DNA from: Oculina patagonica
Taxonomy: Eukaryota
Length of the DNA stretch: 64,000 nt
Direction of reading: 5' to 3'
Assembly: GCF_052425735.1 (NCBI RefSeq)
Contig: NC_135768.1
Span: 7,812,001-7,876,000 of the forward strand
The notes beneath the pieces were generated by a model, which was given only the letters and a program-made list of their open reading frames with translations, ran no database searches and was not told the DNA's origin. The position numbers and the translations under genes are program-made. Positions 1,374-35,800 of this stretch are shown in pieces (the first letter of the stretch is position 1; every line of letters starts with the position of its first letter).

Positions 1374-1593
1374 ATGCAGTGCGAAAAGCCCGCTGGAGGA
1401 TTCCTAAAAATCATTTTGGTAAGTTTGCAGGTTTCAAGCGTTTTACTTCAAACACCATAACACAAGTTAACGAATCACCGCTGCCAAACCAACCGGCTAA
1501 CTTAACTATTCTGTGATCTTTTACAGCTATTAAAACTATTGTTGGCGATTTCGCTATGGACAGAAGCGGCCCGATACATACAGACTGCAAGAG
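1374..1593 (+). CDS. Gene A exons 1-2 (1374-1418, 1527-1593): signal peptide
   Basis: ATG...TTG|GTAAGT, 108-nt intron, TTACAG|CTATTA...AGAG|GTAATG. The joined product has a hydrophobic core (FLKIILLLKLLLAISLW), and its phase-1 end matches the CUB exon. Confidence 0.75.
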
Positions 1594-5141: not shown

Positions 5142-5173
<32 letters not shown>

Positions 5174-5652
5174 TATCAACTTTTGCATCAAACTATTTCT
5201 TCCTCTTAGCCGGTTTGTAGCAAGTAAAAGACGGGTGGCATTGTTCCTCAGATTCAAAACAATTTGATTAATTAGTAAGGCAGAGAAATGTCGACTCGAG
5301 TAACTAATAGACTACAATTTTATCTTGTTTGTTAGAATGCGATATACCGATCGAATTAACTGGTGATAGGGGAAACTTCACAAGTCCAGGTGGATATGAA
5401 GGTTATCCTAACAACACAAACTGCAGGTAACATGAAATAAACGGTGCCATGCGTGGCACGATTTATTGTTGATAAAATTTCATGTTTAAAACGTTCTTGC
5501 ATTATACGAAAGTATCAGCTCCTAAGGTAGGAAATTACCAAGGAGGAATGAAATAAGGAAATTGTTTACTCAAATTCTGTTGCGACAATCGACAAAAATG
5601 AAATGGGCACGGTAACCCAGAGAATTCAGTTAACATTAGTGAGTAGAAATTT

Positions 5653-5687
<35 letters not shown>

Positions 5688-8600
5688 TTTTTTGGAAAAA
5701 TTTTTAAAAAACCATTTTTATGTTGTTAGAAGAACGTTTTAGCCGTTTGACTGACGTCTGTCAGTTTAAACACCATAGTCGTTTGAAAAAAGTCCCTCGT
5801 AATCTCCCCAGCAAGGGTAATTTAGCTCAAATAAATAGACGCGGTTTGGAGAAGTTAGAGCTAGCACTGTTTGGAGAAGTCAAAGAAAATAGGGGGGGAG
5901 AGAGGGTGACAAAATTGGTCCTAGCTATCTTTCAAGCTCGTTCACCTTCCTCGTCTACGCTCCTTTCCAAACCGCTTCTAACTACGCATTATTTTTTTAC
6001 TTTATCTTTCTGTATTTCAGTTGGGTCATCAAAGGAGACTATAACGCCAAAATCAACATCACATTTCACGACTTTGACTTGGAATTGAGCAAGACATGTC
6101 TTCCGTATGATTACGTCAAAGTATCAGACATGTGTAACAAGTCAAAGACTTGGTCAAAGAACCTGGGAACAGGAGACAACGAAGATGGATACTGCGGCAA
6201 TATGACTTCGTTTACTGTCACATCACGCTGCCAGAAAGTTCGAGTGCAGTTTAAATCTGATGACTCCATAACGGGAAGAGGATTCAACGCCACCTTTGAG
6301 ATCATTCCTGTTCCAAGTGAGTCGAAAAATCATTAACATTGGACCAATCGATCTGACTAGCCATCCATCCCCCCTCCTTCTCTCCCTCCTTCCCACCCTC
6401 CCGTCCCCCTCCGTCCGTCCATCCGTCCATCCATCCGTAGATCCAACTACNNNNNNNNNNNNNNNNNNNNNNNNNNNNNNNNNNNNNNNNNNNNNNNNNN
6501 NNNNNNNNNNNNNNNNNNNNNNNNNNNNNNNNNNNNNNNNNNNNNNNNNNNNNNNNNNNNNNNNNNNNNNNNNNNNNNNNNNNNNNNNNNACTTACCTAC
6601 CTACTTTCCTTCCAACCCACCACCNNNNNNNNNNNNNNNNNNNNNNNNNNNNNNNNNNNNNNNNNNNNNNNNNNNNNNNNNNNNNNNNNNNNNNNNNNNN
6701 NNNNNNNNNNNNNNNNNNNNNNNNNNNNNNNNNNNNNNNNNNNNNNNNNNNNNNNNNNNNNNNNNNNNNNNNNNNNNNNNNNNNNNNNNNNNNNNNNNNN
6801 NCCTACCTACTTTCCTTCCAACCCACCACCCACCCACCCACTTACCTCCCTNNNNNNNNNNNNNNNNNNNNNNNNNNNNNNNNNNNNNNNNNNNNNNNNN
6901 NNNNNNNNNNNNNNNNNNNNNNNNNNNNNNNNNNNNNNNNNNNNNNNNNNNNNNNNNNNNNNNNNNNNNNNNNNNNNNNNNNNNNNNNNNNNNNNNNNNN
7001 NNNNNNNNNNNNNNNNNNNNNNNNNNNNNNNNNNNNNNNNNNNNNNNNNNNNNNNNNNNNNNNNNNNNNNNNNNNNNNNNNNNNNNNNNNNNNNNNNNNN
7101 NNNNNNNNNNNNNNNNNNNNNNNNNNNNNNNNNNNNNNNNNNNNNNNNNNNNNNNNNNNNNNNNNNNNNNNNNNNNNNNTTCTCCATACTTCCTTCCCTC
7201 CCTTGCTCCATGCCTCCATCCATCCTTGTCATGTATCGTTTGTTTGTTACAATAATCTGACATCTTTTTCGTGCCACGGTTTATTACAGAGCCACCGGAG
7301 ATACTAACATTCTGCCTCGTTGGTACCAAAAACTGTTCAGAAAGTCTGGTTGTAACGGAAACCTTCGATGAGACGCTGAAGTGCGAGGTATCAGCATCTC
7401 CAGAGGCACTGGTCTATTGGTCTTATCTCGGATCAGATCGCAGGAATGCCAATCAACCACTCGACACCCGTGAAAGGCGCATGATCGACAATCACGATGG
7501 AAGTCTACGGATAAGGGGCCTTAGGAGAAATGACACTGGGTATTACAGGTGTTATGCGAATAACTCCGAAGGAGACGACGAACTTGTGATGCATTTGCGC
7601 GTGAAAGGTAAACTGGGGATTGTCATCTTCCAAATTCTCTTCACAAGTCCCTATATACTTCTTATGGCAACAGTGGGGAGAATTCGATGTTTAATATCAG
7701 TGCTTTTAGTAATATTGTTTGTATACTGGATTTTAATTGACTTTTTTTATTTATTTAAATCCACCTTGAAGCTGAAAAGTAGAGAATAAACTCCATGGTA
7801 ATTTAAAGGGCTGTAAAGTAACCAGTTTGTCAAGGTTTCCTCGGTAATTTGCTGGTACCAGTTGGGTTCGGTAGCAGCTCTAGCAAGTCTCACATGAATG
7901 GCTCGCTATCCTTCGAGAGAACAATAAAACGATAGCAGGAACAATGCCTCTAGCCCTAGAAATCAATAACAACTGCTACGCTAGGGGACTAATAGAATCA
8001 CAAGTTTACGAGAGCTGTTACACTACTGCACCAATTTATACCCTTGGGTAGAAAGAGGTGCTGTAAGAAAATGGTGCTGTGTTCAAAAGCAAACAAGGGC
8101 CTTAACTGCAATTACAGACAAAAATCCAACACCCTAACCATAAGACCATTAAGTGCCTCACTCAATGATTAAAGGATGTACATTTAACGGACCTAAGTCA
8201 GCCTCCGCTATTTCCGATACCATCAATATTATGATAACTGTATGGTAAAGCGAAATCTTATTGCATTGCTGTAAGTTGTATTACTTGAACTCTGGTTAAT
8301 TACCTTTAGCAGTTTCACAGAGATATTTTTCGTTTAGACACACGTAAATATAATATAAAATATTAATATAAGAAATATAAATATAATACCAAAACTCTCG
8401 TATGTAATAAACAAAAACAAAGACGCGGCTGACTAGGGTCCTTTAAGGAAATACTGTCATCCTTTTCTCCAATCTTTTTTTTTCTTTGGTTTTCAGAGAA
8501 GTGCAAATGCCCCAAGGTTATCAAGGCTAACTGGTACGACATTCCACCATACATTCGCGACGAAGGATCCGACCGGGAACCCTCTGGCTTATTCCCGATG

Positions 8601-10647
8601 CTTCTCCAAACAATCATTCCACTGTGTTGTGGAAACTGCTCGGAGGGCGACGGTCCGTCATCGATCTCCTACATCGACCAAAAAGAAAACCTGGTAGCCA
8701 TCAAAAATATCCGCAACTTTGAAACTGATGACACGATAACGTTTCCGATCAGTGGCAAGAAGGAGGATCGTTTTTATCAGAATGACTTCAAGTTTATGCC
8801 CCTGGTAGGCTCGCCTGGCGTTGCTTTTATTGTTGTTGACGAGCCACCTGGTACTTCAGCCAACGCCGTGTTCCAATCTGTCCTGTCTGGTTGGCCTGTG
8901 CTTCTTCTCACGCTCATGATGGCCTTACTGTCCGGGATAATTATGTGGGGACTGGTAAGTACGATTCAATCTTGAACACACTCCCCCCTTCCCCGGTCTT
9001 AACTTTTGCTAGGATATCCCCGGCTTACGTGACTGATGAATAAATGACCTAGCTCCCATAAGTTTCTTAAAGCTCAGAGGTCGAACGGCCGACCGTTGTG
9101 CAAAAGGCTATAGATTATATTCTTCTTGGAGTGAAATCTATAACCTGGACTATTTGTCCTTACTAAGTTATGGATATCTCTTTCTCAGTTTATTTATTGC
9201 TTGTGTCTGCGGCGACCACTGTAGTTCTGTCATCTTGAACATCCTCTTCCCCTGTCTCTTGTAGCATCCAGTCTCCCACGACCGAGATCACCCTCACTGA
9301 GATTATCTTGAAGACCCACAATCACTGAGTAAGGAGATTGCATGTTGATATTGATGGAATTTTTTTACCATGATTTTGTTTTAAAGGACACGTGGTATAA
9401 CCCGGACGAGTTTCCGAGGTCGTTTATCAAAGGCAGCGGAGAAGGTTTCTGGTGGGCTTTTGTTACTATGACAACCGTAGGGTGAGTGCTATCTTAAAAT
9501 ATATTTGCAGAGAAAAGTTTTCTCAGCTTACTTCGTATTCTTCTTTTCAAAGAAGACCTGGTTAAAAGAAGAAAGCAACTCTCCAATAAGTAGTTAGTGT
9601 TGTACATTTTTTTTTTTTTGCTACATATTTTTTGGTCAGTTGAATAACAATTCTCTGCTACCTCGTTTTGTTACAGTTATGGCGATCGATCTCCTCGTGG
9701 ATTTGTGGCTCGTATTTTTGCGATAGTCTGGGTTCTCGTTGGCCTCGTTATCACGTCCATTTTCACTGGTGTTGTGACTACTTCCTTGACAGCCATAACA
9801 CTGAGTACTGACGTCAAACTGTATGGTACTAAGGTGGGTTCCAGCCGTGCCCTTAAATTTAGCTGTTATGCATAGAAACTATGAAACCATTTAACAAAAA
9901 GATGATTATACACTTTCCTGGTACTGTTTATAATACCTGTGCAGCTGAGTTAACAGACGAAATCTTAGCCTGTGACCATTTACACGAAAGCTATAAAGCA
10001 GTACTTTCATAGAAAATACAGCCAATCAGAATACAGGAAAGCCGTTGTATATTCGACGGTATTCAACCCAACCTTCCCATCGTGCGCTGCGATTGTATTT
10101 TCGACGAAATTTAGTAAGCGTATTTTCTATGGCATGGTATAAAATAGTTACACAACACTTTCTCGTTGTATACTATGGAATATCCCACGAGTCACTTGTA
10201 TTTTCTTGGTATACACACGAGCCTTTAGGCGAGTTTGTGACTCGTGGGATATTCCATAGTATACCACTCGAAAGCGTTGCATAACTAGTATATACAAGGT
10301 GCTTCTAACTTTTAAGTCAGTGTATGAATTCCTTGTGTGCGGCCATTCCGAACAACGTTAGATTGGCACTGGTTAAAATGCCGCAATAGGTGGATTTAAC
10401 TTTTTTTTTTAATTTGCGTCTGTGGATAAAAACATCAAGCGTGAAGAATAGCCGTTATTGATTTCATTATTTTGAGTAACACTTTTGACATCAAAGGCAG
10501 TTTGTTGGATAACTCGCAGTAGATGTTATTTTATCCTTGCGTTATGGGTGATCATGTTTTAGTAATAGTTCGACTTAATCGCCGACCGGTTAGCTCAGTT
10601 GGTAGAGCGCCGGACTACCGTGCGAGAGGTCTCGGGTTCGAGTCCCA

Positions 10648-10688
<41 letters not shown>

Positions 10689-13600
10689 TATGCTGCCTTT
10701 GCAATGACATCTGCAAATGGTTTGATATTCTAGTCTTCTCGGATAAGGACGATAAACCGTAGGCCCCGTCTCCTGCATCTTCAGTGTCACGGTCAGCAGG
10801 GGACGTAAAAGAACCCACACACTTATCGTTAAGAGAAGGGCATGATGACTTAAGTTAAAGTTACAACTTTTTTGTTACAGATTGCAGCAGTGGCTAACTC
10901 TACCGAGTACCGGCTAGGACTGAATAAAAATGCGAACATGACAGGTTCGTGTTCACTAAGTTTCTTTGGGTTCACGTGTCTATTTTAACTCCAAAAATGA
11001 CTTTGATGTATCAAAAAAAATTAGGGAACAATGCCTATACGTAAGTAATAAGAGATAAAAAGCAATTTCAAGTCAGATTTCGGAGGTGGAAACGTTTAAT
11101 ATATAAGCAGTGATATCTAACACTTAATGACTGGTCTTGAGGGAAACAGTTAATTTTGTTTGCCGAGATTCTAGGGAAACAGAATCAACTAGTTTCCCGA
11201 GGTACCAGTCATTAAATTATTTGTTATGTGTTAAATATATGAAGACCTGTTAACCTTTAGTCACAGAGTTTAACCTTCCGTAAACGAAACCGTCGTTGTG
11301 TGCGACTATTCAATGTTAAGCTTTTGAGCAGTTCTTTCAAATAGTGCTATTTGTCTCTTGAGAACGAAATTTGGATTTTTTTCTCTTTCTCATTTGGACA
11401 TCTTGAGGATTAAAGGTTAGTTATACTTGCATTTAGCCCTATTCTGCGCAGCATGTTGGGCGAGTCACAACATGATGCGTAGAATAGGGCTAAATGGAAA
11501 GAAATAGTTGTTGCCTCATGTCTCACAAGGGATGAAGAGTATTAAGTAAGTAACGAAGTCTACATGCACTGACATGTGTTTTTACTATGTGATTCTAATC
11601 TCACAGCATATCACGACTTACAAGCGATTGTGGAACCTCTGAAGAATCGCGAAAATGGCTTGAAGGGAGTGTTAGTCGACACTTACGTCGCTGGCGAAAT
11701 GTCAGATTTTTCCAGCGAGGAGCTACGTGTCAATAAGATCATTGATCACAACTCGTACTACGGTATTGTATTTGGAGGAGGGAAGCTGGAAGGAAGAGAA
11801 TTTCAAACCTGCTTCGAGGATTATGTCCTGTCGAATCAAGCTGACATCTTTGAGACTGTGAAGCAGAACACTCAACCCATGAGTGTAAGCTTTTTATATA
11901 CATTCATTATATAAACTGCAGTGGTGTGGCGAGTGATAGCAAATCGAGAAAAATGGTATCACACATGTGTGGATAAAAATGATATCCATACATGTGTGTT
12001 ATCATTTTTGACCAATCAGCTCGCAGAATTTGCCATGTTTCAATGTGAAACATCCTCATGTTTCAAGTCGAAACATCTTCGGATCTTCCTCGGCAATCTT
12101 CGGAAAACTTCGGAATCACTCGTACAACCTTACGACAACATTCTAAAAATTTTCGGAAATCTTCTGAAAATGGTCGGGAATCTTCGGAAAATCGTCAAAA
12201 ACATCGTAATTAGTAGGTTTATCCTCTATTACTCATTGCGTTTAGGGTTATGATTGCTTGGAACGACGATGGTCCAAAATGTCGCTCAACGCCATTCTTT
12301 GATAAAATAATATGCCCTAAGTCCTCTATTTTTATCGTTGAGAAAAGCTGAGAGGGGAGAAATTGGACTAAAGTAGCTTTCATTGTGTTCTTGTTTCGTG
12401 ATTGTGAATACGTTCAAATCTAGATATGTTCGGACCATTACATATCTCGGACATCCCAACAGATTCGTTCTGTTCAAAGTTTGAATTCAATTTTTTTCGT
12501 AATTATGAATGGCTGAGCTACTGAGCGAGTGCGACCCCTAACTCCCTTTACCGGAGAAGAGAATAAGGAGTTGGTAGTGACTTTTTTTCCAGGGAGTACT
12601 GTAGCGTAACTGTCCATTCAGTAAAAAAGGCGTGTAAGCGTCTTACGCGTCCATCTGTCTATTTCTACAGGAACCGTCCGAGAGCGCAGCAGTAGAACGT
12701 TCATCCGGGTTATTTGACGCGACCTCTCCCTTGTTCCAAAACGCCATCTACACGTGCCTCGGCCTGCTGCTGTTTTTTACGGCTTGTGGCATTATCTGGG
12801 ATTACGGCTATATGAGGCATTGGAAGAAAAAAGCAGAAATGGGTAAGACCAACGGGATTTTTAAGAGGATCATAAATTTCTCCCCGCAGTTTTTGTGGCT
12901 TTTTCGGCTAGTGTACGTTACAGGAAATAGCTATTGATACATAACGAGCTCTGTTTGGCTACCACTGACATTCATCTTTGGGAATAACATATTATTAGCC
13001 ATTTTTACTCCTGGGTGGAGAATAGTATTATAGTGAGAGTATTGTGTCTTGCCCAAAAACACAACATAAGGCCAGTGGCCATTACCCAAACCCGGACATT
13101 TGCATTTACAATCCAACACGATCTCCACGTACAGTCAACTCCTACTATTACTGACACCTTCGGGACCACGATTTGGTGTCCGCAATAGAGAAAATACGTA
13201 GTGGCGGGAGGTATTTTCAGTAATTCTTATTCGCCGGGATTAAACTCTTTTCCCTAGTAAGGCGGTGTCCGTAAAAGCGAGGTGTCTGCAAGGCGGGAGT
13301 TGACTTTATTCTTTTAAAGGCACACAAAACCATGTGTGTATGAAGCTAAGTGATAAACTACATTTACTTTACTTTGCATATCATGTGGAAATGGCTGTTT
13401 CACAGTTTTGCAACAAATATATCACGATAAACTTCGAATTCTTCATTTCTAGCCATGGAAATTTTGCCGTATCTTGCATTTCCAAAATGACTGACAAGCT
13501 GTCTCGCGTTGCATTGCAGATGAGCTTGAACTGCTCGGTGGACCTGGGTACGAAATGGCCAAGAGGAACCTGGACATGATGGATGCCTTGATGCAGGAGG

Positions 13601-20144: not shown

Positions 20145-23100
20145 TTATGGGACTACCCCGTTAACATATCTCACAATGCTTCCTCTAATAGGGAACCCGA
20201 ACACATTCTTTTGAACGTTTCCATTCGTAGCTTCAACATCTCCTTTTTCAGCCTGTTCTTGTTTCAGACGCGCCAATAGTCGTAATTCTCGTCGATGTTT
20301 CGCTTTGAGATTTTCCAGCCTCAAGCGACAGTTTTTGTGGAAGTCTGTTAGTATCTTTCTCATCGTTTCTTTACTGTTATTGTATTCGTAGAAAGGGTCT
20401 TCCTTTCTGCCAGATTCCAAGTAGTCACTGTATTCTAGAAGTTAAGGTACAGAAAGGAAATATTTTAATTATAAATTGCCAGTTTTTTAAGAATATACAT
20501 TGGTTACACATATCTTTGCGTGACCATGCCCCTTGGTTTTTGCTAGTAATTTTACTTACAATGTGTTTGGTTTGGAAAGCTGGTATTTTAAGCTGTCATT
20601 CATTCTCCCTACGGACATAAGCTGTGCAATTTTCGTAGGAATTTGTCCAGAGAGACGTGACATTTCGGCAGTGGTGACCTGTTTTCCGTTTCTTTCTATT
20701 TATATCAGCCTCGTCCCAAGGGCGCTCTTCTCTTCAAATTTGGAAGACCTTGGAAGGGCCACTTTGAAGGGAAAAGCGCCCTAGAGATATAAGAGCCTCC
20801 TGTGGATAAACTACCATGATTCGTTAGCGTAGTTGCACTTTCCATTTATGTGGAGAAACCGGTGAGAATATTCCGAAGATGGACAATTTTTAAAGGGACA
20901 GTACAATTTTTCAACCAACACAATGGCATGGGGCAACTTCTTACCATTTGAAAACTTTTCAGTAGAAAGAACTGTTCTATTTCATTTCCTACCATAACAT
21001 CTTTCATCGGGAAGCATGGTATTAGTGCGAAAAAGCAAAATGGTACAGTTGTATTCTGAACATTCCAGAAAAAAAAGGGAAAAAAAGGAATTCCTCTGAA
21101 GGTATTCTATTTTTCCGAACAGTGGAAGGAACCGTTCCATTTGATTTTTTTACCGAAAAAAAAACAGGTTTCTTCGCACAAATGGAAAGCGCTACAGCAA
21201 TATGATATGCCGAGAGGGCCGGTATGGGCTGTATGATAAAAACAAGTATCTTACCATATCTTCTTGGATTTGGGTTGCGTTTCTTTCGGGTAAGTATCTC
21301 ATACACCAGGAAAATAACTGTTAATACAGCTAAAGAGCCTCCGCACCACGTGATAGTCTGAATGTAGACAGGAGACTCCGCGTCAAACAACCCTTCTGTA
21401 ATGTCAGCGGCTTTGTCTTTCTGTAATCCCTGCAATAGTCCAAACAGATAATTAAATCAATTCTCCGTGAGTGCATGCATGTGTACTTTTGTTACTCTTA
21501 CTCAAGTCTGGTGTAGTATTAAATACAATGCCTAGGTTCGAGGCTGCGCTCATTTAACCACAATTTATTCTCGTTCGTAAGAGACTTAAAGGGCGTGCGG
21601 CAACCAAAGAATAAAAACACCACGATCGCTACCATCACCCACAGCAACAAATCAACAACAGTAGATGTATAGTAAATGGTTTGAACCCAGGAGTATCAGT
21701 AGGTCGTATAGTGTGATCGTCCGGGTGAAAGTAGTTCTGAGAAGAGCTGTTGTCGGTGACTGACGTTTCGACAACCTGAGCAGAAGTCATCTTCAGAGTC
21801 AAGTGAAAAGTTGTTGTCAGTCGATGATGTTATAAGTCTGGTCCGTTGAAGTTGATTAGTCAGTTTAGCCGTGATGTTATTGGCTGTAAGACTGGTGTAA
21901 AGTTTGTCATCAGTAATTGGTCAGTTTCGATCCGTCTATTGTTAGTCTACTTAAGTCGTTTTGTTAAGTCTACTAACAATAGACGGATCGAAACTGACCA
22001 ACAGTTGATGTCATAGTTTTATCCAGAACTTAACGCTCGTATTACTGCGGCGACTATTTTCACTGTATCACGTGTTCACATGTTCAGCCAGTTTAGAAAG
22101 GTAATCTTTAAAAACTATGTCCTTACGTATGTACTTGTGACTTTCAGTACATTGTTTCGACGTAGGTGATATAATCGTGATAAAATAGTCGATCAAAGAA
22201 GGAAATGAAGTTAATACCATAGCTTTTAATTTTCAATTACATTAACATACTGAAAATGTTCTTTTTTTTTGGCGCTATGTTGCTAGATAAAATACCGACG
22301 TTTCGGCATTATCGCTCTGTCTCTCCGGAGTTCAAAACAAAAAGCTAAGAGCCAGTTGCTTGAACCTAAAGAAGTCAGTTGTGCCGAAACGACAATATAT
22401 CGCTGAAAACAAAAAAAAAAACAATTAATCTTTATTTTTCTAGTTCAACACGCTAAGTAGTTAACATCGTTATTAATTTCTATTACCGTAACTCCCTGGA
22501 CATTGTTAGTGATGATTTCAAACGTAGACGCTCTCTCCTCTTTGAGAAAATCTCGGAAGCACTTTTGCAGCTTTCTAGCATGCCCGGCCATGACGACCCC
22601 GTATGCCGAGGGGTAATTGATCATTTTGGTCATACGAAGACCTCGACCCCTAAATAATTCCATGCGACTTCCTACAGTGTAAGAATCTATGAGAGCCCCG
22701 TCCACGTGTCGGTCCGTAAGAGATTTGGCCAAGTCCTCAAGTGTCGTATACCGTCGCTCTGAAATGAAATAAAAGAAATATTTAATAACTCGACTACTAA
22801 TTTAAAGATAGAGACTGTACAGACAGTTCTTCGAGTTTCACACACAAGGCGATCGTCAGACTGTGCATTAAGTGCAGTCTAAAGAAATTTTAAACTCATG
22901 GAGGACTGTTAGTCAGAGAGATCCTTCTTCTGATTGGCTGTTTAAAATTTAGTTTCGTGCCTTCATTTGGTGATCAATTTAGATCTCTTTTTAAGCAAAG
23001 TAGATCTGTCAGCAGATAGAATATACAGCTTCTCCGTCATACATAAGAGTCTTCCTAGAGTGCATGATAATCTCAATGTCTTCATTAGAAACGGTGGTAA

Positions 23101-23859
23101 ATTGCCTCGCGTAGTCTAGGGCTTCAGAAATGGACGGGTAGAAATCAACTATATCAAAAATCAGGAAGGTGTGCTGGCTCTTGTCTTCTATACTTGAGAA
23201 CCAATTGACAACAGAGCGTGTGTTCCTCCATTGGAACTCGACTACGCATTTTTCACAGTGTACGTTCGAGCAATGAAGGTTCAAGTGGAATCGGAAGCCA
23301 CGGGCGACTTGTTTTACTCCAAACAACTGGGCATTTAAAGGCGTCATTTCTATTGTCTATAAGAGTGTATACTATAAAAGAATGTCGTCGATTTGTTTTT
23401 TACAATAATAATAAAACTTTATCAGCGAGAATTTTCAGAAACGTTTAAAATCAGCCAATTTACTTTCATAACCTTTCGGTTTTCGTTTATTGGGAAAGGC
23501 CGCCAGTTCTCAAGTTTTAATTGAGTTGCATTATGGTTCTCATCAGCGATAGCTCTCGACCTATGAGGACGCGAGAATTTTGCCAGTTACTGTAAAAAAT
23601 TTAAGTATTATTGCCATGAAGTCATGTCAAATTTTACTCTGCAATTTATTTTCGTGAAGGCTTTCGAAACGTCTTTTTTTAGAACTCTGAAGTGTTGTGT
23701 TGTTTATAAAACTTTTCACTTGACTTCTTCTAACAAGACCAGATACGAGTAAAACATACTTTGTCAGAAGGGAACACGATTATAATACTTACCTCGATCC
23801 ATTTGGGCATTTAGTCGAATTCCAAGACGAAATTCCGCTGAATCATCAATGGCAGAAAC
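20145..23859 (-). CDS. Gene B exons 17-20: S2 lobe, M4 helix, cytoplasmic coiled coil and tail
   Basis: VSAIDDSAEFRLG...DGALIDSY...AYGVVM...QKCF (S2); TITWCGGSLAVLTVIFLVYEIL then TRKKR (M4); MRKILTDFHKNCRLRLENLKAKHRRELRLL, then TAA. Confidence 0.88.
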
Positions 23860-26800
23860 CTTCGAAGTGCAGGCAAGAAATAAATAGATTAAAAAAAATT
23901 AAATTAAATAAAACGTATAAACTTTCACCAAAGGGCACCATAGCCACACAACAAATGGCTGACATTTATTTTACCATCTTCCAATGATTTCAATCAATAT
24001 GATAGTATGTGCCACAATTTTGTTCTGTATTTACTGCTATGACGGCTTTCGAATCCAAATAGAAAGAGTGAAAACTTTTCGTTTTATGAAACGCGAAAAT
24101 TTTCCATTTTCTTTAAATAAGCTTTAAAGAAGATCAGCGAAATGTACCAATAAGAAGATAAAAACGTACGGTGTTGAACCATTATGTTTACAATGGAAAC
24201 CCGTCTTACCGTCTTACTATTGAACGGGAACTCCTTTTAATAATAAGAAGAGAAATAGATTATGCAGCTTGCTTATGTCAACTTACTTTCGAGCCATACA
24301 CGGCGATGTCTGATTTGATGATGTCCATAGTCAATGACGTAGTTATGAATGACATCACAAGCGCAATGATAACTAAGCCACACGTGATCCACACGATGCC
24401 AAACAACTTGGAGTGTATGCCGCGGGGAACACGGTCTCCATATCTTCAAAATATCACCAACACTATTGTTACAAACGAAAGTCCTCTTTGCAGAAGAGAA
24501 CAAGCTTAAAACATTGCATCAAACAGCTGCGACATTGCACACAGCACTGTCTGCATCATTTTCACTCGTTTTTGCTAAACTCTACAACATTTTGCGCAAA
24601 ATTGCTGACGCGGCAAGCAAGTTCTGTCCCCAGTTGCACAAAAGTTGGATAGTGATTTATCCGTTGCTTAGCGTTATCCATCCTTTTGTCAATCAAGGAT
24701 AGATTTTTACAACTGATAAAACCCAAATTGGCTACGGTAGAGACAGACAAGCAGCTTCCTCTTGGTACTTTTGCCTGAAGGTGGAGGAGAAAGTTCTAAA
24801 AAAGAAACATTAACGTCTTTGGGTTAGGGTCTTGACAGCTAGAAGTCAGGTAATGGCCGATAGTTGTGCCTCGCCAATTGACGGCAGCAACACAATATTG
24901 CAGATTTTGGACACACGTTGGTGAGCGGTTGCAGTTTTACAAAATAAATGTTTCACTGTGTGTCCGCGCGTTGTGGCTTTATCAGGTTTACCCTCTTTTT
25001 AAGCTTATTGATTGACGTTAGTCACTCACCCTACGGTTGTCATGGTTACAAATGCCCACCACATTCCTTCAATTGGTCCCCGCATGGGAGAGGATGGGAA
25101 CTCGTTGCTATTGAAAAAGAAGTCCTGTTGAAATGACAGAAATATGGTTTTGTTAGACTCAACTGATTTTAAATGTACTTCTGAAGTAGCTATTTTCACA
25201 TTCGTCGTCACAGGCTTTAAAGCAAAAAAGAGACTGCTCTGTTATAAAAAAAAAAAGAGTGTACCCTACTCCCCCAGCAAAAACACAGCAGCGACAATTA
25301 AACAAACTCACCATAAACCACATAACGATTCCAGCGAAAAACGCAGAAATGAAAACAGTCACGATCAAGGGCCATAAGTCAAACACAGCTTTCACCACCA
25401 TTTTGGCAGCGGCTCCTGGTTCATCTGCAGCCACTATAAACGCTACTCCCGCCGATTGAACCAGAGGCGCGAAACCATACTCGTTAGAATAATCCGTTTG
25501 CTCCATCCGCCCATAAACGGGAAAGCTCAACTCAGTCATATCACCTATTGCCTCTCTGACGTCTTTTTCGGTGTCTTTTATAGCTGACGTGTTTGGTCCC
25601 GATGCGCGATAATCAATATCGGTGTAGCCGTGCTGACGACACTCTCCACAGCAGCTGCGCACGACAAGGTGCAGAATTGGCGGGAAAATTCCCGTGACGT
25701 TATCGTTGCTTCCTTCTGCCATATATGGAGGGTTGAGCCAATAGTTTGTGTATAGTTTTCTGTAGCAATTACAGGTTTCTGTAAATAACAAATAATAAAT
25801 ACTTTGATACAAATGAACTATAGAAACTTCATGGGTTGCGAGAGGTTTGGAACAGAGAAACATACTTTACTTAGTTTATTATGCTAATAAACGCCTTTGT
25901 ATTAGCATAAACAGCACGCACACATTAAAAGTTGACATGAAAGTTTTAATAGCAGTGCATTTCTCTTGTTATATGGTGAAGGAATGCTCAAATCGTTCAA
26001 TGTTCGTATGATGGTAAGTGATGGAAGACATATTTGTTTTTAGAGCAATTTATCACGCCAGAAGCCGTCATTTTCCGTGATGAAATGCATAAACGTCGTT
26101 TGGAATGTTCGTGCCTCGCATTTGATATTTGTTTCTTCAGCGTATTATAAATCTGGCCACTGTTTTCAAAAATGCCTAACTCCATAAGATAAGTTTCTTT
26201 GTCGAAACTCGTTTTACATATATCTTTAATTTAAAAGTTTTGTCAATGTCTTTTGATTTGAACCGGTCGGCCTGAAGCAGGTATAACATGGCCAGCAGAG
26301 TCGGCGAATTTGTATTTAGTACAGTAAGCATGCGTTCGTTAGGCAATAGTAAGCTAACCCGCACGTGCGCCCGTAAATAACTGTTGTCAGTATTTCTTCT
26401 AAGTCAGAGATAAAACCTCTTCGAAGCCATGAAATGTTACGAATAAATAATAAAAGAATTGGGCTCGACTAGTTTTGATTTATTGATTTCCAAATTGTGA
26501 CAAATTTGAAAATACACGCGAAAAATAATCCTAAATTGTTCTAAGACCCGCCTCGTAAACAAAACAGTTGAGGCTGGCTTCATACTTAATTTAGTCAGTC
26601 ATTGCTTTTCAAATGCCATGCTCGGCTCCTCAAGGTTTTTAATTGTTATAGATCAATTCAATGGCTTTAAAAATGGTCGACTCCACAAAATTTGTTTCTA
26701 ACATCGAAAGAAAAAATCATTTCAGTGCATGATAAGATTAAGAAAATAAAATTGAATTATCTTTACCAGCGAAAATGACTGCAGAAGGCGTCCCGTTTCC

Positions 26801-29800
26801 TTTGCTTGTAAAAGCACGGACCTGGATGCTGTAAATTGTAAAAGAAGACAACTGGTGAAGCTCGACGGAAAGAGTGTTAGGCCCAACTGTTACGTTCTTC
26901 TCCTTTTCTTCCAGTTCTTTGTTAGGATTTCTGACCGCTCGGTAAGACACGGTGTAACCCAACAAAATACCGTGCACGTTATAAAGGTCCCGGATTGGTT
27001 GCCATGACACTGGGATCATCGTGGGGGTTGTTTTGTTGGTGGCGATGACGTTTTCTGGAGGTTTTCCTGGAGCTGCGAGAAAATATAATTAAAAGATATG
27101 TTATGTCAAATAAGGCCTGTAACTATCGCTCTATTGCAATTAAGCCGCAGATATCATAAGCATGAAATAAATGAAAGAAGGTAAGGACGAAGTTATCCAA
27201 CTATACAAAGCGTTTTTTTAGTTTTAAATGAACAATATAGCATCAAATTACTTTTAAGGGCCAAGTAACAACATTTAGGCTCAAAAAAGATAATTGGTCG
27301 AAGCATTTAACTTCAAGTTTGTTTTGGGAGAGTAGGGATGGCGCATGCAGTGGTGAGAGCGTTTGGCTCCCACGAATGTGGCCCGGATTCAATTCCTGAA
27401 CCTTGCGTCATATGTAAGTTTAGTTTATTGCTGTTTTTTTTTTTCCTTTACTCCGATGATTTATCTCCGGGTTCGTCGGTTTTCCTACCTCCAGAAAATC
27501 CTACGCTTCCAAATTCCAATTCGATTACATGGTCCACAATTTCTAGCTTTAAATACTACCGTGTCTTAACAACGTTAATATTACCCGTGAACTCAATATC
27601 TAAAATACCAACTAACAAAGGCAACGATAGAACTTTTCAAAACCCCTTCATTTACAAATAATTTTCAAAAATAACGTTGAGAGAATGCATGACGCTTAGC
27701 AAGAAGAATTTAAGATTTCAAGCTTGAAACTATGAAAGTTCTTTTATACTAACCATCCTCATCAGTCTGTGCCACAACTTCAGGGCTAATAGCTCCCCAG
27801 CCCACCCTGGTGAAACCCAGCACTCTAATTCCATATTTGGTGTACTTCCATAACCCAGCCAGTTCCAGGCTGGTGCGGTTAGGTCCAACCTCGCGTTCTC
27901 TGTACATGTCCTCAGACTCATTCATGGCACGGTAAAGGACCACAAACCCGAAGAGCACTCCGTGAACATAGTCTTGGGGAATTGTTTCCCAGTTAACTTT
28001 AATACTTGTGGAACTTGTGTTTAAGACTGTAGTTAATGTTGGCGGCTTGCTTGGCCCTGAGTTTAGAGGAAATCAACAATGAGATTGAGATGGAAAGTTC
28101 TTTACAATGAGGTCTTTGTTGTGGGAAGTGGCTGCTGATAAGTATTGAGGGTAAAAAATCTTGCGCTTTGTTGGATGATTTTCAAAACTTTCAGTTTCAT
28201 TCACTGCACCTTCGAAACCTTGCTTGACGGTTGACGATAAAGCTTCCTATAGTTTGCCGGTGAAATGTTTAACTTAACTTGCCGAACGTTTAAAAAAATT
28301 CCTTGTTTGTAGGTAATTTACGCTTAACTCATTAAAAATGGCATGCATTCAAATAATAATGGTTTATTTAGTTTTTGCAACTGCTAGAGTGATTTCATTC
28401 AACCCGTGAAACAATATCTAACACGGTTAGTACGTAATATAGTCAGTCAAAACTAAACAAAAGAAAACAATGGAATTAGTGCTTAATAGTATCTAAAAGT
28501 GTAATAATTATTTCACGGGTTTAGTAAAATCACTCTAACGCTGGGGTTAGGCTTAAGTAAAAAAATAGTACTTTTGTGCATAGTATGTTTTCTTTTGAAT
28601 TTCTAAAAATGCGAAGGTTAACTGCAACTCAATCCCAAATTAAAATTCGCAGCGTTCCCCAGAGAGTTAACGAAAGACATACATACTGGCGTGAACATGT
28701 GTACTTACGATCCTCTGTGGTTGATACAGTGAAGAATTTCGCTCGAACGCCGTTCCCTTTTGATGTGTAAGCTAAAATAGTAATGTCATATTCTGTGTAC
28801 TTGGTCAGGTTTTTAAGTTCAGTCGTGGTTGATTGAGCTGATATGTTCTTAAACTTTAGCTCGTCCAAGCCCCTGGATTTTTTGTACAATATTCGATAGC
28901 CTAGGATGATGCCATTTTGATGGTTCGCGGGGACTGGGCGCCAGTGGATGAACAGGCTTGTTGATGTGGAGTTGTCTTTGGCGACAGTGACATTCTGAGG
29001 AGGTTGAGAGGGGACTGTTGAAAGAGGCGAAAACTTATTAAGTTATCAAAAAGCAAAAACCTGAGTCCTATTTGGTATTCAAACGATACTACATGGGTAT
29101 GCCACATGGGTATGCCACATGTTTTATGCATTATGGTATGCCACATGTTTTATGCATTATGAGCATATAAGGCAAAAATTTATCAGAAGGTTGTTTGTAA
29201 TTTATCTCATTCTCCTCTCTCTTGCTTATCATGTCTTTTTTTACTTAATTATCACCTGGTTGGTATATTTTCTACATTGGCAAACTATTTTTTTTTTAAG
29301 TTTTCTTTGTTTTGAAGGTTATTTTACAACGCAAAAATGTTGTATTCTGATGGTCACCTGACACCTTTAAGTCAAATCAAACAACATGTAAATCTTAAAT
29401 TACAAGGCAAAGCTGGAAACATGAATTATTTCCTGTTGTACCCCGTATTAAGTTACACATTAGTAAACCATTAAAATTGTTTTTTGTAGCTTTTTCCCCA
29501 CATGCAGGAGTGTGTGCCTTTAAAAAGTACGGGACGTCGAAACTTGTCTTATAGGGTAGCCGTCTCGACTAGCTCTTAAGACTAAATGTGGCTTAGCTTG
29601 TATATTAAAACTGATATTATATTGAAATATATATGTGTATTAAAGTTTCCAAATTCTCAATAAAAACATCACGACAGTGACACTAGGAGGAGTTAACAAT
29701 TCAAAAATCGGAATAGAAAAAGTAAAAATGCCATGTCGTTCTAAAAAACAATAAAATCAACACCAACACAAATATCAGTGACAATGGCAATAACAAAAAG

Positions 29801-32800
29801 GCAATAGTTTAGCCACGTACCATCTTCATCCGTCCTGATCATGTAAGCCTTGCTCAAGGTTCCTCTCCCTTTTCTTGTAAATCCTCCTACTTGGAAAGCA
29901 TACGCACCATACTTTTTAAGGTCAGTTATGGTGGCATCATGATCGTTGGCGCCAACTGTGATTGTTTTCCAAGTGTTAAGATAGCCTGCTTCCACCCGAC
30001 GGTATTCTACTTGGTATCCTAGCAACCGGCCGTGAACGTACCGCTGAGGGATTGCTTCCCAGTGCACTCGAATGGCAGTGGAACTGGTATAATATATCTG
30101 TGAGATGTTTGGAGCTCGACTGGGAACTGTGAAATTTGTAATTCAGTATATGGGTTAAAATGTTAGTCGTACTTAGGGCCAAAGTGACCCGCAACCCAGA
30201 GCTATCTCACTGGTGGGAAACAGAACTTATTCGACATCGGATTCTCATACAAACAATGTATTAAGCGCTATGTGTACAACTCGTTCGCGAACTGGTCAAG
30301 CTCTCTAACTCTGGATGGGCTCCTTTAGGCTCCTTTGTTTGAGATCTTTTGCCAACTTTTGCTGCAAGTTGTGGAAATGTTATCCTTCCCTTTGAAGTTA
30401 ATTGCTTAAGGGTTCAAATATACACTAGTCTAAAAAGAGGTATTTCATGACAAATACTACTTAACAAGATAAGCATTAACAATTAAGAGAAAAAACTACT
30501 TGCCATCCTCCTCAGTCCATACTGTGACGTCATCGCTTGAGACACCCACTCCCACGTCATTGACAGCCGCCAAGCTAATGACGTAACGAGTGTACCTCTC
30601 CAGTCCAGTCACGTGATGGTTTGTCACATTGGGTGGAATATGTATAACCTTTGTAAAATTTGCCTTATCCTTTGTAAAATTCATCTGATAGCTGAGTAGA
30701 ACACCATGGATGTAATTTGTTGGCAATGGGTCCCATTCCACAAGGAGCTCTGTAGAACTCAGGTTTCGCGCAGTTACGTTTGGAGGCGCACCATCTGGAA
30801 CTGAAAACATTCTTTTGTAACTTCCGGTTAAGAAAAGCGTTCAATTTAAACAGAATATCCACATTTCAAGTAAAAATTAACCATTCAGACTCTTGTCTAC
30901 CAAGAAAAGTTACATTTAAACAGGTTAAACCTAGGAGCTTTTGACCAGGCTCCGGTTGTTCAAAGGGTGGATAACACTATCAACCGAATAAATCGCTATC
31001 CAGTGGATAAGTGTTGACAAAACATACTACGCTATCGACCGGATACTGATTAAACCAGTGGATAGCATTATCCACCTTTCAAACAACTGGGCCAGGACAA
31101 TCAATGTGGATGTATCTACAAGATCGATATATATTCTGTGGTATCCAACGCACTGCACACTGAAATAACGGTTCACACTTTAGGGGCGGATGAGTGATAG
31201 CTAATGATGCTTTCAGTTTTCTCGCCATCTTGCTGTACCCGAAAATTTAAAATTCAGTTTAAACACTGCTCGGAATTTCTCGAGTTTTCGGGACTTACCA
31301 TCTTTGTCCGTGTAGGTACATACAGGGAATGAAGCTTTTCCGTCTCCTCGTCTGTTGTACCCCATAAGTCGCACGCAGTACAAGGTGTAAATCTGCAGAT
31401 GTTTTAATTCTACGTGCGTGTTATTCTCCCCTTCTACCAATAGATTCCACGATGCACCTTCCTCGTCAGTGTACACGAGGCGATAACCAAGGATGCCACC
31501 ACCCCACAGACTGTGAGGCCGGATTCTGCTCCATGAGACACTGATACTTCGAGAACTTGTGTTGTGAGCTGTGACTTGCTCAGGTGCGTAACTGGGAACT
31601 TAGAATGATAATTAATTTATTTATTACATTCAATAAACACGAGGCTTGATCTTTACATTAAAATAAACCTGAAGCATGACATTAGAGATGGCCTCTTATA
31701 TTGAACTGCCTCGAGAAAGGTTGTTGTAAAAAGCACAAAAGCCTAAGCGACAATATCGGAAAGTGTTACCGTTGATGAAAATTCTCTGTTCTTTTGTTAA
31801 AGCTCATAGTACGTTCTTCAGCGCGATAGCAAGAAAACAATGAATTCTGAGGAATAGTGTTTTAAAGGAACGGTGAACTACACTACCCATGATACGATTC
31901 ATCTTAACAGATATCGCGTACGCTTTTATCCTTCTGTACTAATTAAGGATCATATTTGCAGATAACAAGCGCACTCTATTCTCGAGGTTCCTAGATGTAC
32001 TATCTATAAGTATCCCGTACGCGGATACTTATTTATCAACATTGTGTCGTGGAACTAAGTAATTCAGATCTCTAGCTGTTCTGACGTATCCCAAATGTTA
32101 AATTGCTAAAAAAAAAGGTTAAAAATTAACTTGGTGCCTACCGTCTGTACTGCTGATGTAATGAGTTTTGACCGCCATCGAATATAGCATATTCTTCATC
32201 GTCAGAGCGTCTTGTAGGGCGATTACTCCAGAATAACGATCCGCCCTGAAACCGAACTGTAGTACACATTGTACACCGGGGCCTCTGCTATAAACAGAAA
32301 ACAAAGAGCATGTCTCAGTTTCCTTGTGTGAAAATAAATCAGGGTGTTATGCTATGCTAAGTACATTGAGTACAAGACGTTATTTACTACCCAAATTTGG
32401 AATTAGCCAACTAGAAGCTTTTTGCCGCCTTGATTCCCTGCGATATGAAGTCTGCTGACCCGATATCACCGAGTTTTGACCGAATTTTAGCACGTGTCGC
32501 TGAAGTCGAACCAAACTCACTTTATATGCAGCCGAAGAGTACTAGAAAAGGTACAATTAGAGTCTAATACGAAACAACCATACTTATAACTGTACATTTT
32601 AATTGACATTAACAATATTTTTATAAGGTAACTCCCTACCCATCAGTAGTTCCACACCATTTGACGTCAATCGAGTCCAGAGCGGAATTTTCGTCATAAA
32701 TTTTATGGACCTGCAACGTAAATGGGTGGGCAATTATTCCGGCAATGGGGTAGCAATGATAAGATCCTCGTCGTGTTCCCACCCATTTATGCAATTGGGG

Positions 32801-35800
32801 AAAGAAGCCTGAACAAATCCAGGGATTCGACTGCTTTTCAGATTCAAACCAAAAACTAACAGACTGTCACACTTTTCTTTGAATGTTACTGGAAATGTGG
32901 TGCAAGAATAACCGTTTGCATCTGACGTATATCAAACTCGTAAACCCAGAATGGGGAGTGGGGGTAGGGGGGAGGAGGGTGGTGTAACACCGCAACTTCG
33001 GTTTTCTTTGTGAGATTTTTGGCTATGACAGATATAGCGTCCCAGAGAGGAGTCACTCTTCAAATTCTGATAAACAAACGTGTGGAGACAATGGGAACCG
33101 GGAGAGGGGATAAGAGATCTTTCACATTGTACGTCCAAAGCCATTATTTCTCTTGCCGAAGCTTAAACTTTAAACGAATTTCTTAGTTGACCATTTTTTC
33201 CATTCTAATCAGCTGACTTCCAGACTAGCATGAATATTTTAAGGGGAAATTAAATAAATCTTAGGCCTCGTTTACATTGTATTTAATCTTGTCCGCCAGC
33301 TGTTTGAACGTGTTAGTTTCCATGTTGAGAATGTCGGTGTTAAACTTCTCCTTTGTGAACGTAACGGCTGTAATAAAACTGATACCTGAGAAAAAAAAAA
33401 CAGAATTAAATGATTAAGGTATCATTGGAATCTAGCTAATTAGACTGATGTAAAGTAGAACGATTTCTTCGTAGGTCACACACTACCTCCCGGAAAGAGA
33501 AATGTCATTGTTTCTTAAAATATAACTAACAGGTCACAAAAATGCCCCAGCCATAGAAAACAATAGAGGTAGTGTTAAACGGTAAAGCGGGAGAATAAAA
33601 AATTATAGGTTCCAGACAGGTAGTGGCTTACTGCCTTAGTGAGACGGTAGTTACGGATCCATTGAGGAACTTAATCTATTTTCTTTATAAAATGTTGAAC
33701 ACGTGATGTAAGCCACGTACTGGACAAGTAGGTCGCCTGCTACCAATCGTAGAGCATGCAATTCCTTGAACATTTTTTCAAACACTTTCAAGTTCAGACA
33801 GCCCTTTGAACAAGAATGTGTAAGAAACATAAAAACAACTCACCAGGACACTCCTCTGTGTTGCAAACCCGACCTTCACGGGGCGGTCCTAACCGCAAGC
33901 AATCTCTTCCACCATGCCTTGGAGCTGGACTATCGCACTTTCTTGACCTTACGCTCTCGCCACCGCCGCAAGTCCGAGAACATGCTGAGAACTTAGACCA
34001 CTGTCTATAATCGCCATCAATCGGGCATGGCTGTATGTTACAGTAAGCTGTCTCCTTAGGAGGACCAAGACGAGTACAATCTTGACCTCCGGCCTCCGGG
34101 GTAGGATTTGTACAGTTACGTGTCCTAAAATGAGTTCCACCCGCACAGGATTTTGTGCACGGCCCAAATTCAGACCATGGAGTGTATCCCCCGCTGACTG
34201 GACAAGGCTGAGTGTTGCAAGACCAATTCTCAATCGCTGGTCCTAAACGAGAACAATTTCTTCCGTCTCCCACTGGGACAGGATTGTCGCATTCTCTAGT
34301 TCTGGTTTTGAGCCCTACACCGCAACTTTTAGTGCAAGGACTAAATGCGCTCCAGTTGCTATAGTTACCATCAATTGGGCACACCTTAATAAAGCATGAG
34401 CGGGACTCTATGGCAGGTCCATACCTGGAGCACTCCTTACCACCATGCTCCGGTTTTGGTCGATTGCACATTCTTGTCCGAGTTTCAGTTCCGCTGTTGC
34501 AACTCACGGAGCATGCACTAAAATCCGTCCATTCGCTGTAACCTCCATCAATTGGACACGGATTTGTATTACAGTCCACTTCCTCTCGTTCCGAGCCCAG
34601 CCCCGAACAATTAAGGCCGCCGTATTGGGGACTAGGACGAGTACAAGTTCTAGTTCGATACTGTTTACCTCCTCCGCAAGTTAACGTACAACGGCTAAAC
34701 ATCGACCATTCGGAATAGTTGCCGTGTACAGGGCAATGTCTTAGGAAGCATATTTCCGTACTGTTGGGATAGCCCTGACAGTCATCGCCTCCGTGTTGTG
34801 GTCGAGGATTAGAACAAGACCTGGTCCTTGTCCTCGTGCCCGGGCCACATGAGACAGTACATGGACTGAAGTCAGACCAGCTGGTGTAGTTTCCATCCAC
34901 TGGAAAAGTGAGCATTTAATAATTTAAGAAATACTTGGAATCGCTGGAAGCAGTTAACTTAAATTTGACTAATCGGTCAAAAAAATCAATCAACCAACAA
35001 ACCAATCTACCGGTCTACCGGTGGTTCGGTCGCTCACTTGGTCTGTCTGTCTGTCTGTCTGTCTATCTGTCTGTCTGTCTGTCTGTCTGTCTGACTGTCT
35101 GTCTGTTTCTGTCTTTTGGTTGGTTGGTCGGACTGTCGGTTTGTCTGTAGGTTTTTCAGACTATCCATTTCAATCAGTCAACCAGTTATTCATTTAATCA
35201 ATCAATCAATCAATCAATCGATTAATCAATCAAACAGTCAGTTAGTCAAGCAACTGAATGTTTTATATGCGAGGCCATCATGGATTTCATTTCGTGGGAG
35301 GGTTACTTATCTTAGAAAGGCAAACATCTTTTTGTCTACAAATTACCTCAATTCTAAGCTTAAACGCAATATAACTTTCGGGTGAAAAAATAACTATTGA
35401 TTTGATGCAATCCTGATGTTATATCACCATTGCGTTTCTTTAACTTAGGCAAAGAAAAATAATTAAAAAAAAGCTTCAATGAGCATCTTTAAGAGCAAAC
35501 TGCTGCATTTTACCTGCCTTAGACTTCATAATATAACAAATATCCTCTTTTGACAAGAGACCATTCCAGACCGCAAGCTCATCAATGGTCATCTTAATAC
35601 TTCTCAACCGAGCATTGTTCGCTCCCATCATAAGCGTGTGATACGGTGGAACAGGTGCAAGGCGAAAACTGTATTCAACAGTATCCTTCTCGTATGGCAC
35701 AGAACTGCAGTTTAATAACACATCGACCTTGCTTTCCGTTTTATTCCAAGTTAAAGCCACAAAATTCCATGTCGAATAAGTCCACTTAACTTCAACATGT

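Follow-up and report, generated by a model that had tools for sequence, protein, structure and literature searches.

GluR0-like genes with an intact potassium-channel filter and an M4 segment in the coral Oculina patagonica and other animals

A stretch of 64,000 nucleotides from the stony coral Oculina patagonica (NCBI RefSeq assembly GCF_052425735.1, contig NC_135768.1, positions 7,812,001 to 7,876,000; hereafter, the window) carries two genes, gene A (1374-13695, + strand) and gene B (20145-36201, − strand), whose products are probably subunits of a ligand-gated K+ channel of the bacterial GluR0 type provided with a eukaryotic-style ending. Each gene encodes a TTVGYGD filter that is interrupted by an intron, within a two-helix pore that divides a clamshell domain into halves S1 and S2. 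An earlier note on the window had drawn attention to this filter and had proposed that it lies in an inverted, ionotropic glutamate receptor (iGluR)-like membrane orientation. Here, we describe the genes, the pore, the fold and the family to which they belong, and we weigh the explanations that these results allow.

Results

An intron divides the filter in both genes

In gene A the string ...GFWWAFVTMTTVG is continued as YGDRSPR across a GT..AG intron at 9482-9676, and in gene B ...GMWWAFVTMTTVG is continued as YGDRVPR across an intron at 25029-24444. Nucleotides 9387-9481 (+) translate as DTWYNPDEFPRSFIKGSGEGFWWAFVTMTTV with a trailing GG that precedes the donor GTGAGT; following the acceptor TTACAG, the leading T of 9677-9833 (+) finishes the Gly codon, after which the frame reads YGDRSPRGFVARIFAIVWVLVGLVITSIFTGVVTTSLTAITLSTDVKLYGTK. 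The corresponding segments of gene B, 25124-25030 and 24443-24287 (−), give ...GPIEGMWWAFVTMTTVG joined to YGDRVPRGIHSKLFGIVWITCGLVIIALVMSFITTSLT..., and the pore exons, of 95 nt and 157 nt, are equal in size and phase in the two genes. The splice-site reading of both strands reproduced exactly the coordinates of the earlier note. Its strings for M3, which stand in place of the iGluR SYTANLAAF motif (SIFTGVVTTSLT in A and SFITTSLT in B), and for the basic clusters after M4 (RHWKKK in A and RKKR in B) were likewise exact, and the M3 strings match a bacterial GluR0-type motif, FTAxxTxxLT.

The translation of a 12-exon model of gene A (Table 1) equals, at every residue, the annotated 738-aa hypothetical protein ACROYT_G035167 of Oculina patagonica (P0175 in our set), and all of the introns are of the GT..AG type. 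The joints 8954/9387, 9481/9677, 9833/10881, 10944/11607 and 12842/13520, all GT..AG, are present in spliced contigs of four out of four public runs, and the joint 11884/12671 is present in those of three. These contigs contain only the exonic fifth of the stretch; that they derive from RNA is a guess, for which the spliced form argues. Because the spliced contigs carry the junctions, we conclude that gene A is transcribed and spliced as modelled, the filter intron included. The identity of the model with P0175, the GT..AG introns and the spliced contigs together indicate that the filter reading is not a product of chance. The core of gene B was assembled from seven exons, from 25778 down to 20145, as an open frame of 506 aa, which shows 50% identity over its full length with Nematostella LOC5501884.

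The pore resembles those of K+ channels in sequence

The Pfam model Ion_trans_2 matches the pore in all 21 family members scanned (best E 1.5e-15), including the Nematostella orthologue P0010 at 49.5 bits against a cut-off of 22.5, and Lig_chan matches 20 of the 21 at E values up to 1, with bit scores about at threshold. A family profile compared with solved structures detected the K+ channels LmK, KvAP, Kv1.3, Kv4.2 and Shaker at E values of 4e-14 to 1e-11, and no iGluR was found within its best 60 matches. The pore string of gene A is identical to the Kv1.3 pore at 15 of 19 residues. Among 57 aligned members T-x-GYGD is invariant and the WW of the pore helix is near-invariant; 138 retrieved proteins carry [TS][MIQ]TT[VLI]G[YF]GD, and a hemichordate pore string is identical to that of gene A. 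A homologue search with the P0175 pore alone, aimed at the nearest K+ channel class, returned family members only, and a search of solved structures with the single M3 exon (phmmer) gave weak matches to K+ channels and GluN1. In both genes the M3 string is accompanied by a GYG filter, unlike canonical iGluRs, in which SYTANLAAF is combined with a non-GYG pore. The A proteins of the coral and of Nematostella are 90% identical in the pore and 56% identical overall. A frozen pore with a diversifying clamshell is the pattern to be expected of a receptor repertoire.

Topology and fold

The gene A protein consists, in order, of a signal peptide, CUB and Ig domains, S1, a pre-M1 helix, M1, P-loop, M3, S2, M4 and a coiled coil. 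P0175 has only four hydrophobic segments, namely the signal peptide (about residues 10-26), M1 (405-425), M3 (466-495) and M4 (649-666), and N-glycosylation sequons, such as those at residues 515 and 528, occur in its CUB, Ig, S1 and S2 parts. Since the signal peptide and the CUB and Ig domains precede S1 with no intervening hydrophobic segment, M1 is deduced to run from outside to inside. S1 is continuous with secreted-type domains and forms a single domain with S2, which implies that M3 returns from inside to outside and that the P-loop is cytosolic. The TTVGYGD filter should, therefore, face the cytosol in the products of both genes, as it does in GluR0 and in all iGluRs, and not lie at the extracellular end as in the K+ channel superfamily; the grounds for deducing this placement are the number of hydrophobic segments and the presence of a signal peptide and ectodomains.

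The signal peptide and ectodomain that the earlier note had placed before M1 were found, the signal peptide of gene A being encoded at 1374-1418 and 1527-1593, positions that the note had lacked. The note had also named an additional transmembrane helix before M1 as the observation that would overturn its orientation. Such a helix was considered and rejected, the only candidate being an 11-residue helix (model residues 123-133) that is the pre-M1 helix. The orientation inferred in the note, with M1 running out-to-in, is therefore supported. The inversion itself is not the unusual feature, since every iGluR has an inverted pore.

AlphaFold2 models, built with family alignments, gave a predicted local distance difference test score (pLDDT) of 85.8 and a predicted template modelling score (pTM) of 0.68 for the core of gene A, and 81.8 and 0.63 for the core of the Nematostella orthologue. 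When the latter model was compared with known structures by Foldseek, the best 50 matches were all chains of the ligand-binding and transmembrane domains (LBD-TMD) of GluA, GluN and GluK receptors (E about 1e-10, probability 1.0, 440-490 alignment columns). NMDA receptor chains superpose over about 350 residues, M4 included, and the complete iGluR LBD-TMD arrangement of pre-M1, M1, re-entrant loop, M3 and M4 is present. The clamshell is of the class II solute-binding type and, as in GluR0-type channels, is divided into S1 and S2 by the two-helix pore. About 205 of its approximately 220 residues superpose on the GluR0 core, the fold being complete and compact. The S1 part of gene A has conserved Cys at residues 275, 277, 317 and 320, and protein-language-model features of the gene B S1 exon match Lig_chan-Glu_bd/SBP_bac_3 clusters.

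Relation to bacterial GluR0-type channels and to canonical iGluRs

Bacterial genomes were scanned with the filter pattern and the best 80 loci by likeness to the family were kept, of which 77 had a usable open frame; the sample, having been selected on the filter motif, is biased. Sixty-seven of the 77 frames encode S1-pore-S2 proteins, which scored 105-161 bits with the family hidden Markov model (HMM), several alignments spanning S1 to S2. The other ten scored 56-96 bits, with the six clearest plain K+ channels among them at 56-74 bits, and two K+ channels obtained from protein searches scored 59-66 bits. Three canonical iGluRs of Oculina patagonica gave no match to the family HMM. One canonical iGluR of the coral, at L001:1132-3843:- (G000:C4:15052994-15056836), has an uninterrupted frame of 904 codons or more, which the edge of the locus truncates, and contains STYTANLAAFLT.

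In four bacterial proteins that were scanned with Pfam, SBP_bac_3 is split around Ion_trans_2/Lig_chan, which identifies these four as GluR0-type. Gene A and an Alteromonas protein are 43% identical over a stretch of 102 residues that starts at the end of M1 and extends past M3 into S2, and have in common the M3-end motif FT(A/G)xxTTSLT at the position of the iGluR YTANLAAFLT. The homology to bacterial GluR0-type proteins hence extends beyond the pore. By hhalign, the family and a canonical iGluR of the coral aligned at a probability of 21% (E 1e-3), a weak match that is collinear from the end of S1 to M3. The family departs from GluR0, which has two transmembrane helices and ends after S2, in having M4 (649-666) and a helical tail. 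It departs from canonical iGluRs in that Pfam detects CUB/Ig or FN3/TSP1/LamG modules in place of an ANF-type domain and Lig_chan-Glu_bd. These results demonstrated that the family is GluR0-like by sequence and fold and is not canonical-iGluR-like by sequence.

The family is widespread in Cnidaria and occurs in Bilateria

A profile of the S1+M1 exon retrieved 764 representative proteins at E <1e-3. The named members include Cnidaria (Anthozoa, both hexacorals and octocorals, Hydrozoa and Scyphozoa) and Bilateria, namely the hemichordates Saccoglossus, Glandiceps and Ptychodera and the annelids Dimorphilus and Owenia. About half of them are minimal, of around 500 aa and without an extra ectodomain; many others bear adhesion-type ectodomains of FN3, TSP1, LamG and F5/8-C modules and reach 4218 aa. 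A quick maximum-likelihood tree groups the bilaterian members in one clade next to the cnidarian minimal forms; it places gene A in a CUB-Ig clade that is pan-cnidarian, and the gene B orthologue of Nematostella in an FN3-bearing clade.

The genome of Oculina patagonica has 71 matches to the S1+M1 exon (about 70 loci), many of them clustered on contigs C11, C10, C13, C14, C2 and C8. The nearest copy lies at G000:C11:7800227-7800682, some 20 kb upstream of the window. It is closely paralogous to gene A and probably corresponds to ACROYT_G035165 (82% identical). Genes A and B themselves lie tail to tail, with their 3' ends about 6.4 kb apart. An equivalent convergent pair, a CUB-Ig gene followed by a LamG/TSP1 gene on the opposite strand, occurs in Nematostella vectensis, and the linkage is therefore older than the split between sea anemones and stony corals.

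Other features of the window

Upstream of the channel core, gene B encodes a long ectodomain made up of a LamG-like exon, a single exon of 373 codons that holds six TSP1 repeats, and a series of FN3 exons. Pfam detects an equal set in the Nematostella orthologue (Laminin_G_3, 6 TSP_1 and 6 fn3). Exon coordinates are collected in Table 1.

Table 1. Coding exons of genes A and B in the window
Feature	Coordinates	Strand	Evidence
Gene A coding exon 1: start codon and N-terminal part of signal peptide	1374..1418	+	tblastn of P0175; exact translation
Gene A exon 2: hydrophobic core and end of signal peptide	1527..1593	+	tblastn, exact translation; hydropathy peak at residues 10-26
Gene A exon 3: CUB domain, N-terminal part	5336..5426	+	tblastn of P0175; exact translation
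Gene A exon 4: CUB domain	6021..6316	+	Pfam CUB E 1.1e-12; splice sites
Gene A exon 5: immunoglobulin (I-set) domain	7290..7607	+	Pfam I-set E 1.2e-10
Gene A exon 6: S1 clamshell half, pre-M1 helix, M1	8497..8954	+	Alignment with gene B; AlphaFold secondary structure
Gene A exon 7: M1-P loop, pore helix GFWWAFVTM, filter TTVG; ends in phase 2 within Gly codon	9387..9481	+	Joint 9481/9677 in 4 runs
Gene A exon 8: filter YGD, M3 with FTGVVTTSLT, M3-S2 linker	9677..9833	+	Pfam Ion_trans_2 6.5e-6, Lig_chan 7e-6
Gene A exon 9: start of S2, conserved N-S-T sequon (residue 515)	10881..10944	+	Splice joints, exact translation
Gene A exon 10: most of S2, near-invariant Asp (VLVDTY), YG motif	11607..11884	+	Joints, family alignment
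Gene A exon 11: S2-M4 linker, M4, RHWKKK	12671..12842	+	Joints, hydropathy, exact translation
Gene A exon 12: C-terminal long helix (coiled-coil-like), stop codon	13520..13695	+	Joints; helix 421-468 in model
Gene B exon: S1, pre-M1, M1	25312..25778	−	Alignment with gene A
Gene B exon: pore helix and TTVG, 95 nt	25030..25124	−	Size and phase as in gene A
Gene B exon: YGD and M3, 157 nt	24287..24443	−	Size and phase as in gene A
Gene B first S2 exon	23793..23859	−	Assembled core
Gene B main S2 exon	22487..22758	−	Open frame, assembled core
Gene B exon: M4 and RKKR	21255..21429	−	Open frame, assembled core
Gene B C-terminal helical exon and stop codon	20145..20434	−	Open frame, assembled core
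Gene B ectodomain exons: LamG-like, six TSP1, six FN3; exon borders approximate	26741..36201	−	Open frames; tblastn of Nematostella orthologue

Several features of the introns were also recorded. The gene A intron between the CUB and Ig exons contains, at 6361-7257, three assembly gaps (6451-6590, 6625-6801 and 6852-7179) that are flanked by a simple repeat rich in Pro, Thr, Ser and His in all three forward frames. Four other intron stretches of gene A (9993-10346, 10524-10877, 11940-12293 and 13179-13355) drew very many contigs in all four runs, with ragged joints, loose ends and a summed word depth of hundreds to tens of thousands, whereas the exons stand at tens. They have the look of interspersed repeats that occur throughout transcript and genome data. 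In an intron of gene B (23012-23356, −), an open frame contains FLIFDIVDFYPSI, which we take to resemble a reverse-transcriptase motif and which may belong to a retroelement fragment. Outside the window, contig C9 of the coral carries a dense cluster of Lig_chan exon matches between 15.38 and 15.94 Mb.

Discussion

Gene structure, splicing, domain order, fold, family membership and filter conservation, as demonstrated above, are the basis of the following proposal. The products of genes A and B would each have an extracellular clamshell of the bacterial type (class II/F), its S1 and S2 split by a two-helix K+ pore made of M1, P-loop and M3, with M4 and then a cytosolic helical tail following S2. 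Relative to Kv, Kir and K2P channels the pore would be upside down, its filter being located at the end next to the cytosol and its M3 bundle crossing at the outer end. It is from the analogy with GluR0 and iGluRs that we infer tetramer formation, K+ selectivity, ligand gating and the sign of the physiological effect: four subunits would assemble around one K+-selective pore; when a small extracellular ligand binds, the clamshell would close on it, put tension on the M3-S2 linkers and so open the outer gate, and K+ efflux would hyperpolarise the membrane. The variable N-terminal modules, CUB-Ig in A and LamG-TSP1-FN3 in B, probably serve to position the channel at contacts with the cell surface or the matrix, or to modulate it there. 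GluR0 itself has been found by experiment to be inverted relative to KcsA, and it transports K+ (PMC13099474).

How animals came by such genes allows two accounts, neither of which we put forward as more than possible. One is that these are ancient animal ligand-gated K+ channels that keep, by vertical descent, the GluR0-like state of the ancestor of all eukaryotic glutamate receptors, and that they expanded in cnidarians into a set of inhibitory receptors, either chemosensory or for transmitters, whose clamshells and ectodomains became diverse on a nearly frozen pore. The other, to which we attach a similarly tentative standing, is that an early animal acquired a bacterial GluR0 gene in one ancient transfer, introns, signal peptide, M4, tail and ectodomains being gained later. 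The canonical iGluRs of the coral are far more distant from the family in sequence than bacterial GluR0-type channels are, and the named members of the family are patchily distributed, being confined to Cnidaria, hemichordates and annelids, as a transfer might leave them. However, a single branch with 100% support divides the animal from the bacterial sequences in the tree, which points to a single origin with no donor clade in the motif-chosen, and hence biased, bacterial sample, and M4 superposes on the M4 of iGluRs, a likeness that links the family to eukaryotic iGluRs. A recent transfer from a sampled bacterial clade was rejected, as the animal and bacterial sequences lie on the two sides of that one branch. 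The earlier note had spoken of an animal lineage retaining a state intermediate between K+ channels and iGluRs. Animal genes with a GluR0-like core do exist, but they are found in three groups and not in a single lineage, and one ancient bacterial transfer would fit about as well as retention.

Several observations weigh against a ligand-gated K+ channel. The Arg with which iGluRs bind the carboxylate group is not visibly conserved in the S1 alignment; for that reason we do not assume that glutamate is the ligand, and the clamshell might bind no small molecule at all. Pfam detected neither SBP_bac_3 (PF00497) nor Lig_chan-Glu_bd (PF10613) in the clamshell exons and the 21 family cores, and phmmer searches of solved structures had no matches when made with the S2 exon, with the S1 part of P0175 or with its S2 part. 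A K+ signature is no guarantee of K+ selectivity. The loop between M1 and P is net acidic, a weak argument under the positive-inside rule against a cytosolic location, although bacterial GluR0-type proteins are acidic there as well. Finally, a tetramer prediction with four copies of P0175:398-505 (M1-P-M3) scored 0.24 against a mark of 0.32, which we list here but regard as evidence neither way.

One could envision, first, that the clamshell has no small ligand and that these proteins are K+ channels, either constitutive or gated by contact, matrix or force, or else act chiefly as adhesion receptors, and are run through their large ectodomains. The divergence of the clamshell, the Arg that is not visible and the huge adhesion-type ectodomains of many members would accord with this scenario. 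We nevertheless consider it unlikely, because the clamshell is complete and compact on the GluR0 core, because about half of the named members have no extra ectodomain to be run through, and because two of its features are near-invariant in the 57 aligned members, namely the Asp that ends a strand before a helix (VLVDTY) and a YG motif. The former we judge to occupy the position of the amine-binding acid of GlnBP and iGluRs, and the latter matches the 'YGIA' motif of solute-binding proteins and iGluRs. Together they suggest a ligand that bears an amine.

Another scenario keeps the architecture of the proposed K+ channel but makes it a non-selective, and thus excitatory, cation channel in spite of its signature. 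AvGluR1 of rotifers is reportedly not strictly K+-selective, and the inverted setting together with M4 could change the geometry of the filter. AvGluR1 is described as an animal iGluR with a K+ signature (PMC12332018). This scenario seems to us decidedly unlikely, given that the entire selectivity apparatus is kept (the pore-helix WW, TTVGYGD and the following Asp), that the family pore profile scores like true K+ channels, and that GluR0, with its equally inverted pore, transports K+ (PMC13099474).

A third scenario, that exon shuffling replaced the pore of a canonical animal iGluR by a Kv/Shaker-type pore, would explain the 15 of 19 pore residues in common with Kv1.3, and a synthetic chimera shows that a K+ pore can work in an iGluR clamshell (PMC6385376). 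It is very improbable, since the family is GluR0-like by sequence and fold: the likeness to bacterial GluR0-type proteins reaches the linkers, S1 and S2, the clamshell resembles GluR0 and bacterial cores, and the three canonical coral iGluRs have no match to the family HMM. Least credible is the topology of a conventional K+ channel, in which the filter would lie outside and the clamshell in the cytosol. The Kv-like pore sequence and an M1-P loop acidic like an extracellular turret would favour it; against it speak the signal peptide followed by CUB/Ig (or, in minimal forms, directly by S1) with no other hydrophobic segment before M1, the conserved S1 cysteines, the sequons in S1 and S2 and the basic clusters after M4.

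As a probable ligand-gated K+ channel of the GluR0 type, the family can be set beside five known systems. With GluR0 of Synechocystis and Nostoc, and bacterial GluR0-type proteins at large, it has in common the order S1-M1-P-M2/M3-S2, the K+ signature, the inverted pore and an M3-end motif of the form FT(A/G)xxTTxLT; it differs in the addition of M4, a cytosolic helical tail, eukaryotic signal peptides, introns and, often, large adhesion-type N-terminal modules, and in a clamshell that Pfam does not detect and that shows no evident retention of the ligand-binding Arg. Canonical animal iGluRs (AMPA, kainate, NMDA and epsilon) have the same LBD-TMD fold and topology with pre-M1 and M4, whereas the family lacks their amino-terminal domain and SYTANLAAF and has a GYG filter in place of the Q/R/N-site pore. 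With Kv/Shaker and prokaryotic K+ pores (Ion_trans_2) it shares pore helix, filter and inner helix, but it has the opposite membrane orientation, lacks voltage sensor, T1 and RCK, and is presumably gated by its extracellular clamshell. The rotifer AvGluR1 is described as having a K+-channel signature in the pore loop within a full eukaryotic iGluR architecture (PMC12332018), and by that description differs from the present family, which has no ANF-type domain and no Lig_chan-Glu_bd match. GluATCV*, a man-made construct that joins a viral K+ channel to a glutamate-binding domain (PMC6385376), resembles the family in design, a K+ pore within an iGluR-type clamshell; the family, in contrast, is natural, conserved and expanded.

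No description of the animal family was found in the full-text literature, including the main metazoan iGluR phylogenies, subscription journals lying largely outside this search. Annotated names of members (P0033, P0176, P0184 and P0243) include 'phosphatidylinositol phosphatase PTPRQ', 'Cubilin' and 'Potassium voltage-gated channel subfamily F member 1 / A member 10'; such names come from the ectodomain or the pore and are misleading. Because public names range from uncharacterized, 'Cubilin' and 'PTPRQ' to 'voltage-gated K+ channel', censuses of cnidarian ion channels may misfile these proteins.

The known precedents are bacterial GluR0 and rotifer AvGluR1; to the GluR0-type core the animal family adds M4, a tail in the cytosol and ectodomains that vary between members. 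The step from K+ channel to glutamate receptor had so far rested on bacterial GluR0 and that one rotifer receptor, and the family now provides a conserved, expressed, multi-phylum animal set in which a GluR0 core occurs together with a eukaryotic M4 and an intact K+ filter. Three questions become testable with it: whether clamshell-gated K+ channels can serve animals in fast inhibition or in chemosensation, which ligands the divergent clamshells bind, and whether iGluRs lost K+ selectivity a single time from such an ancestor.

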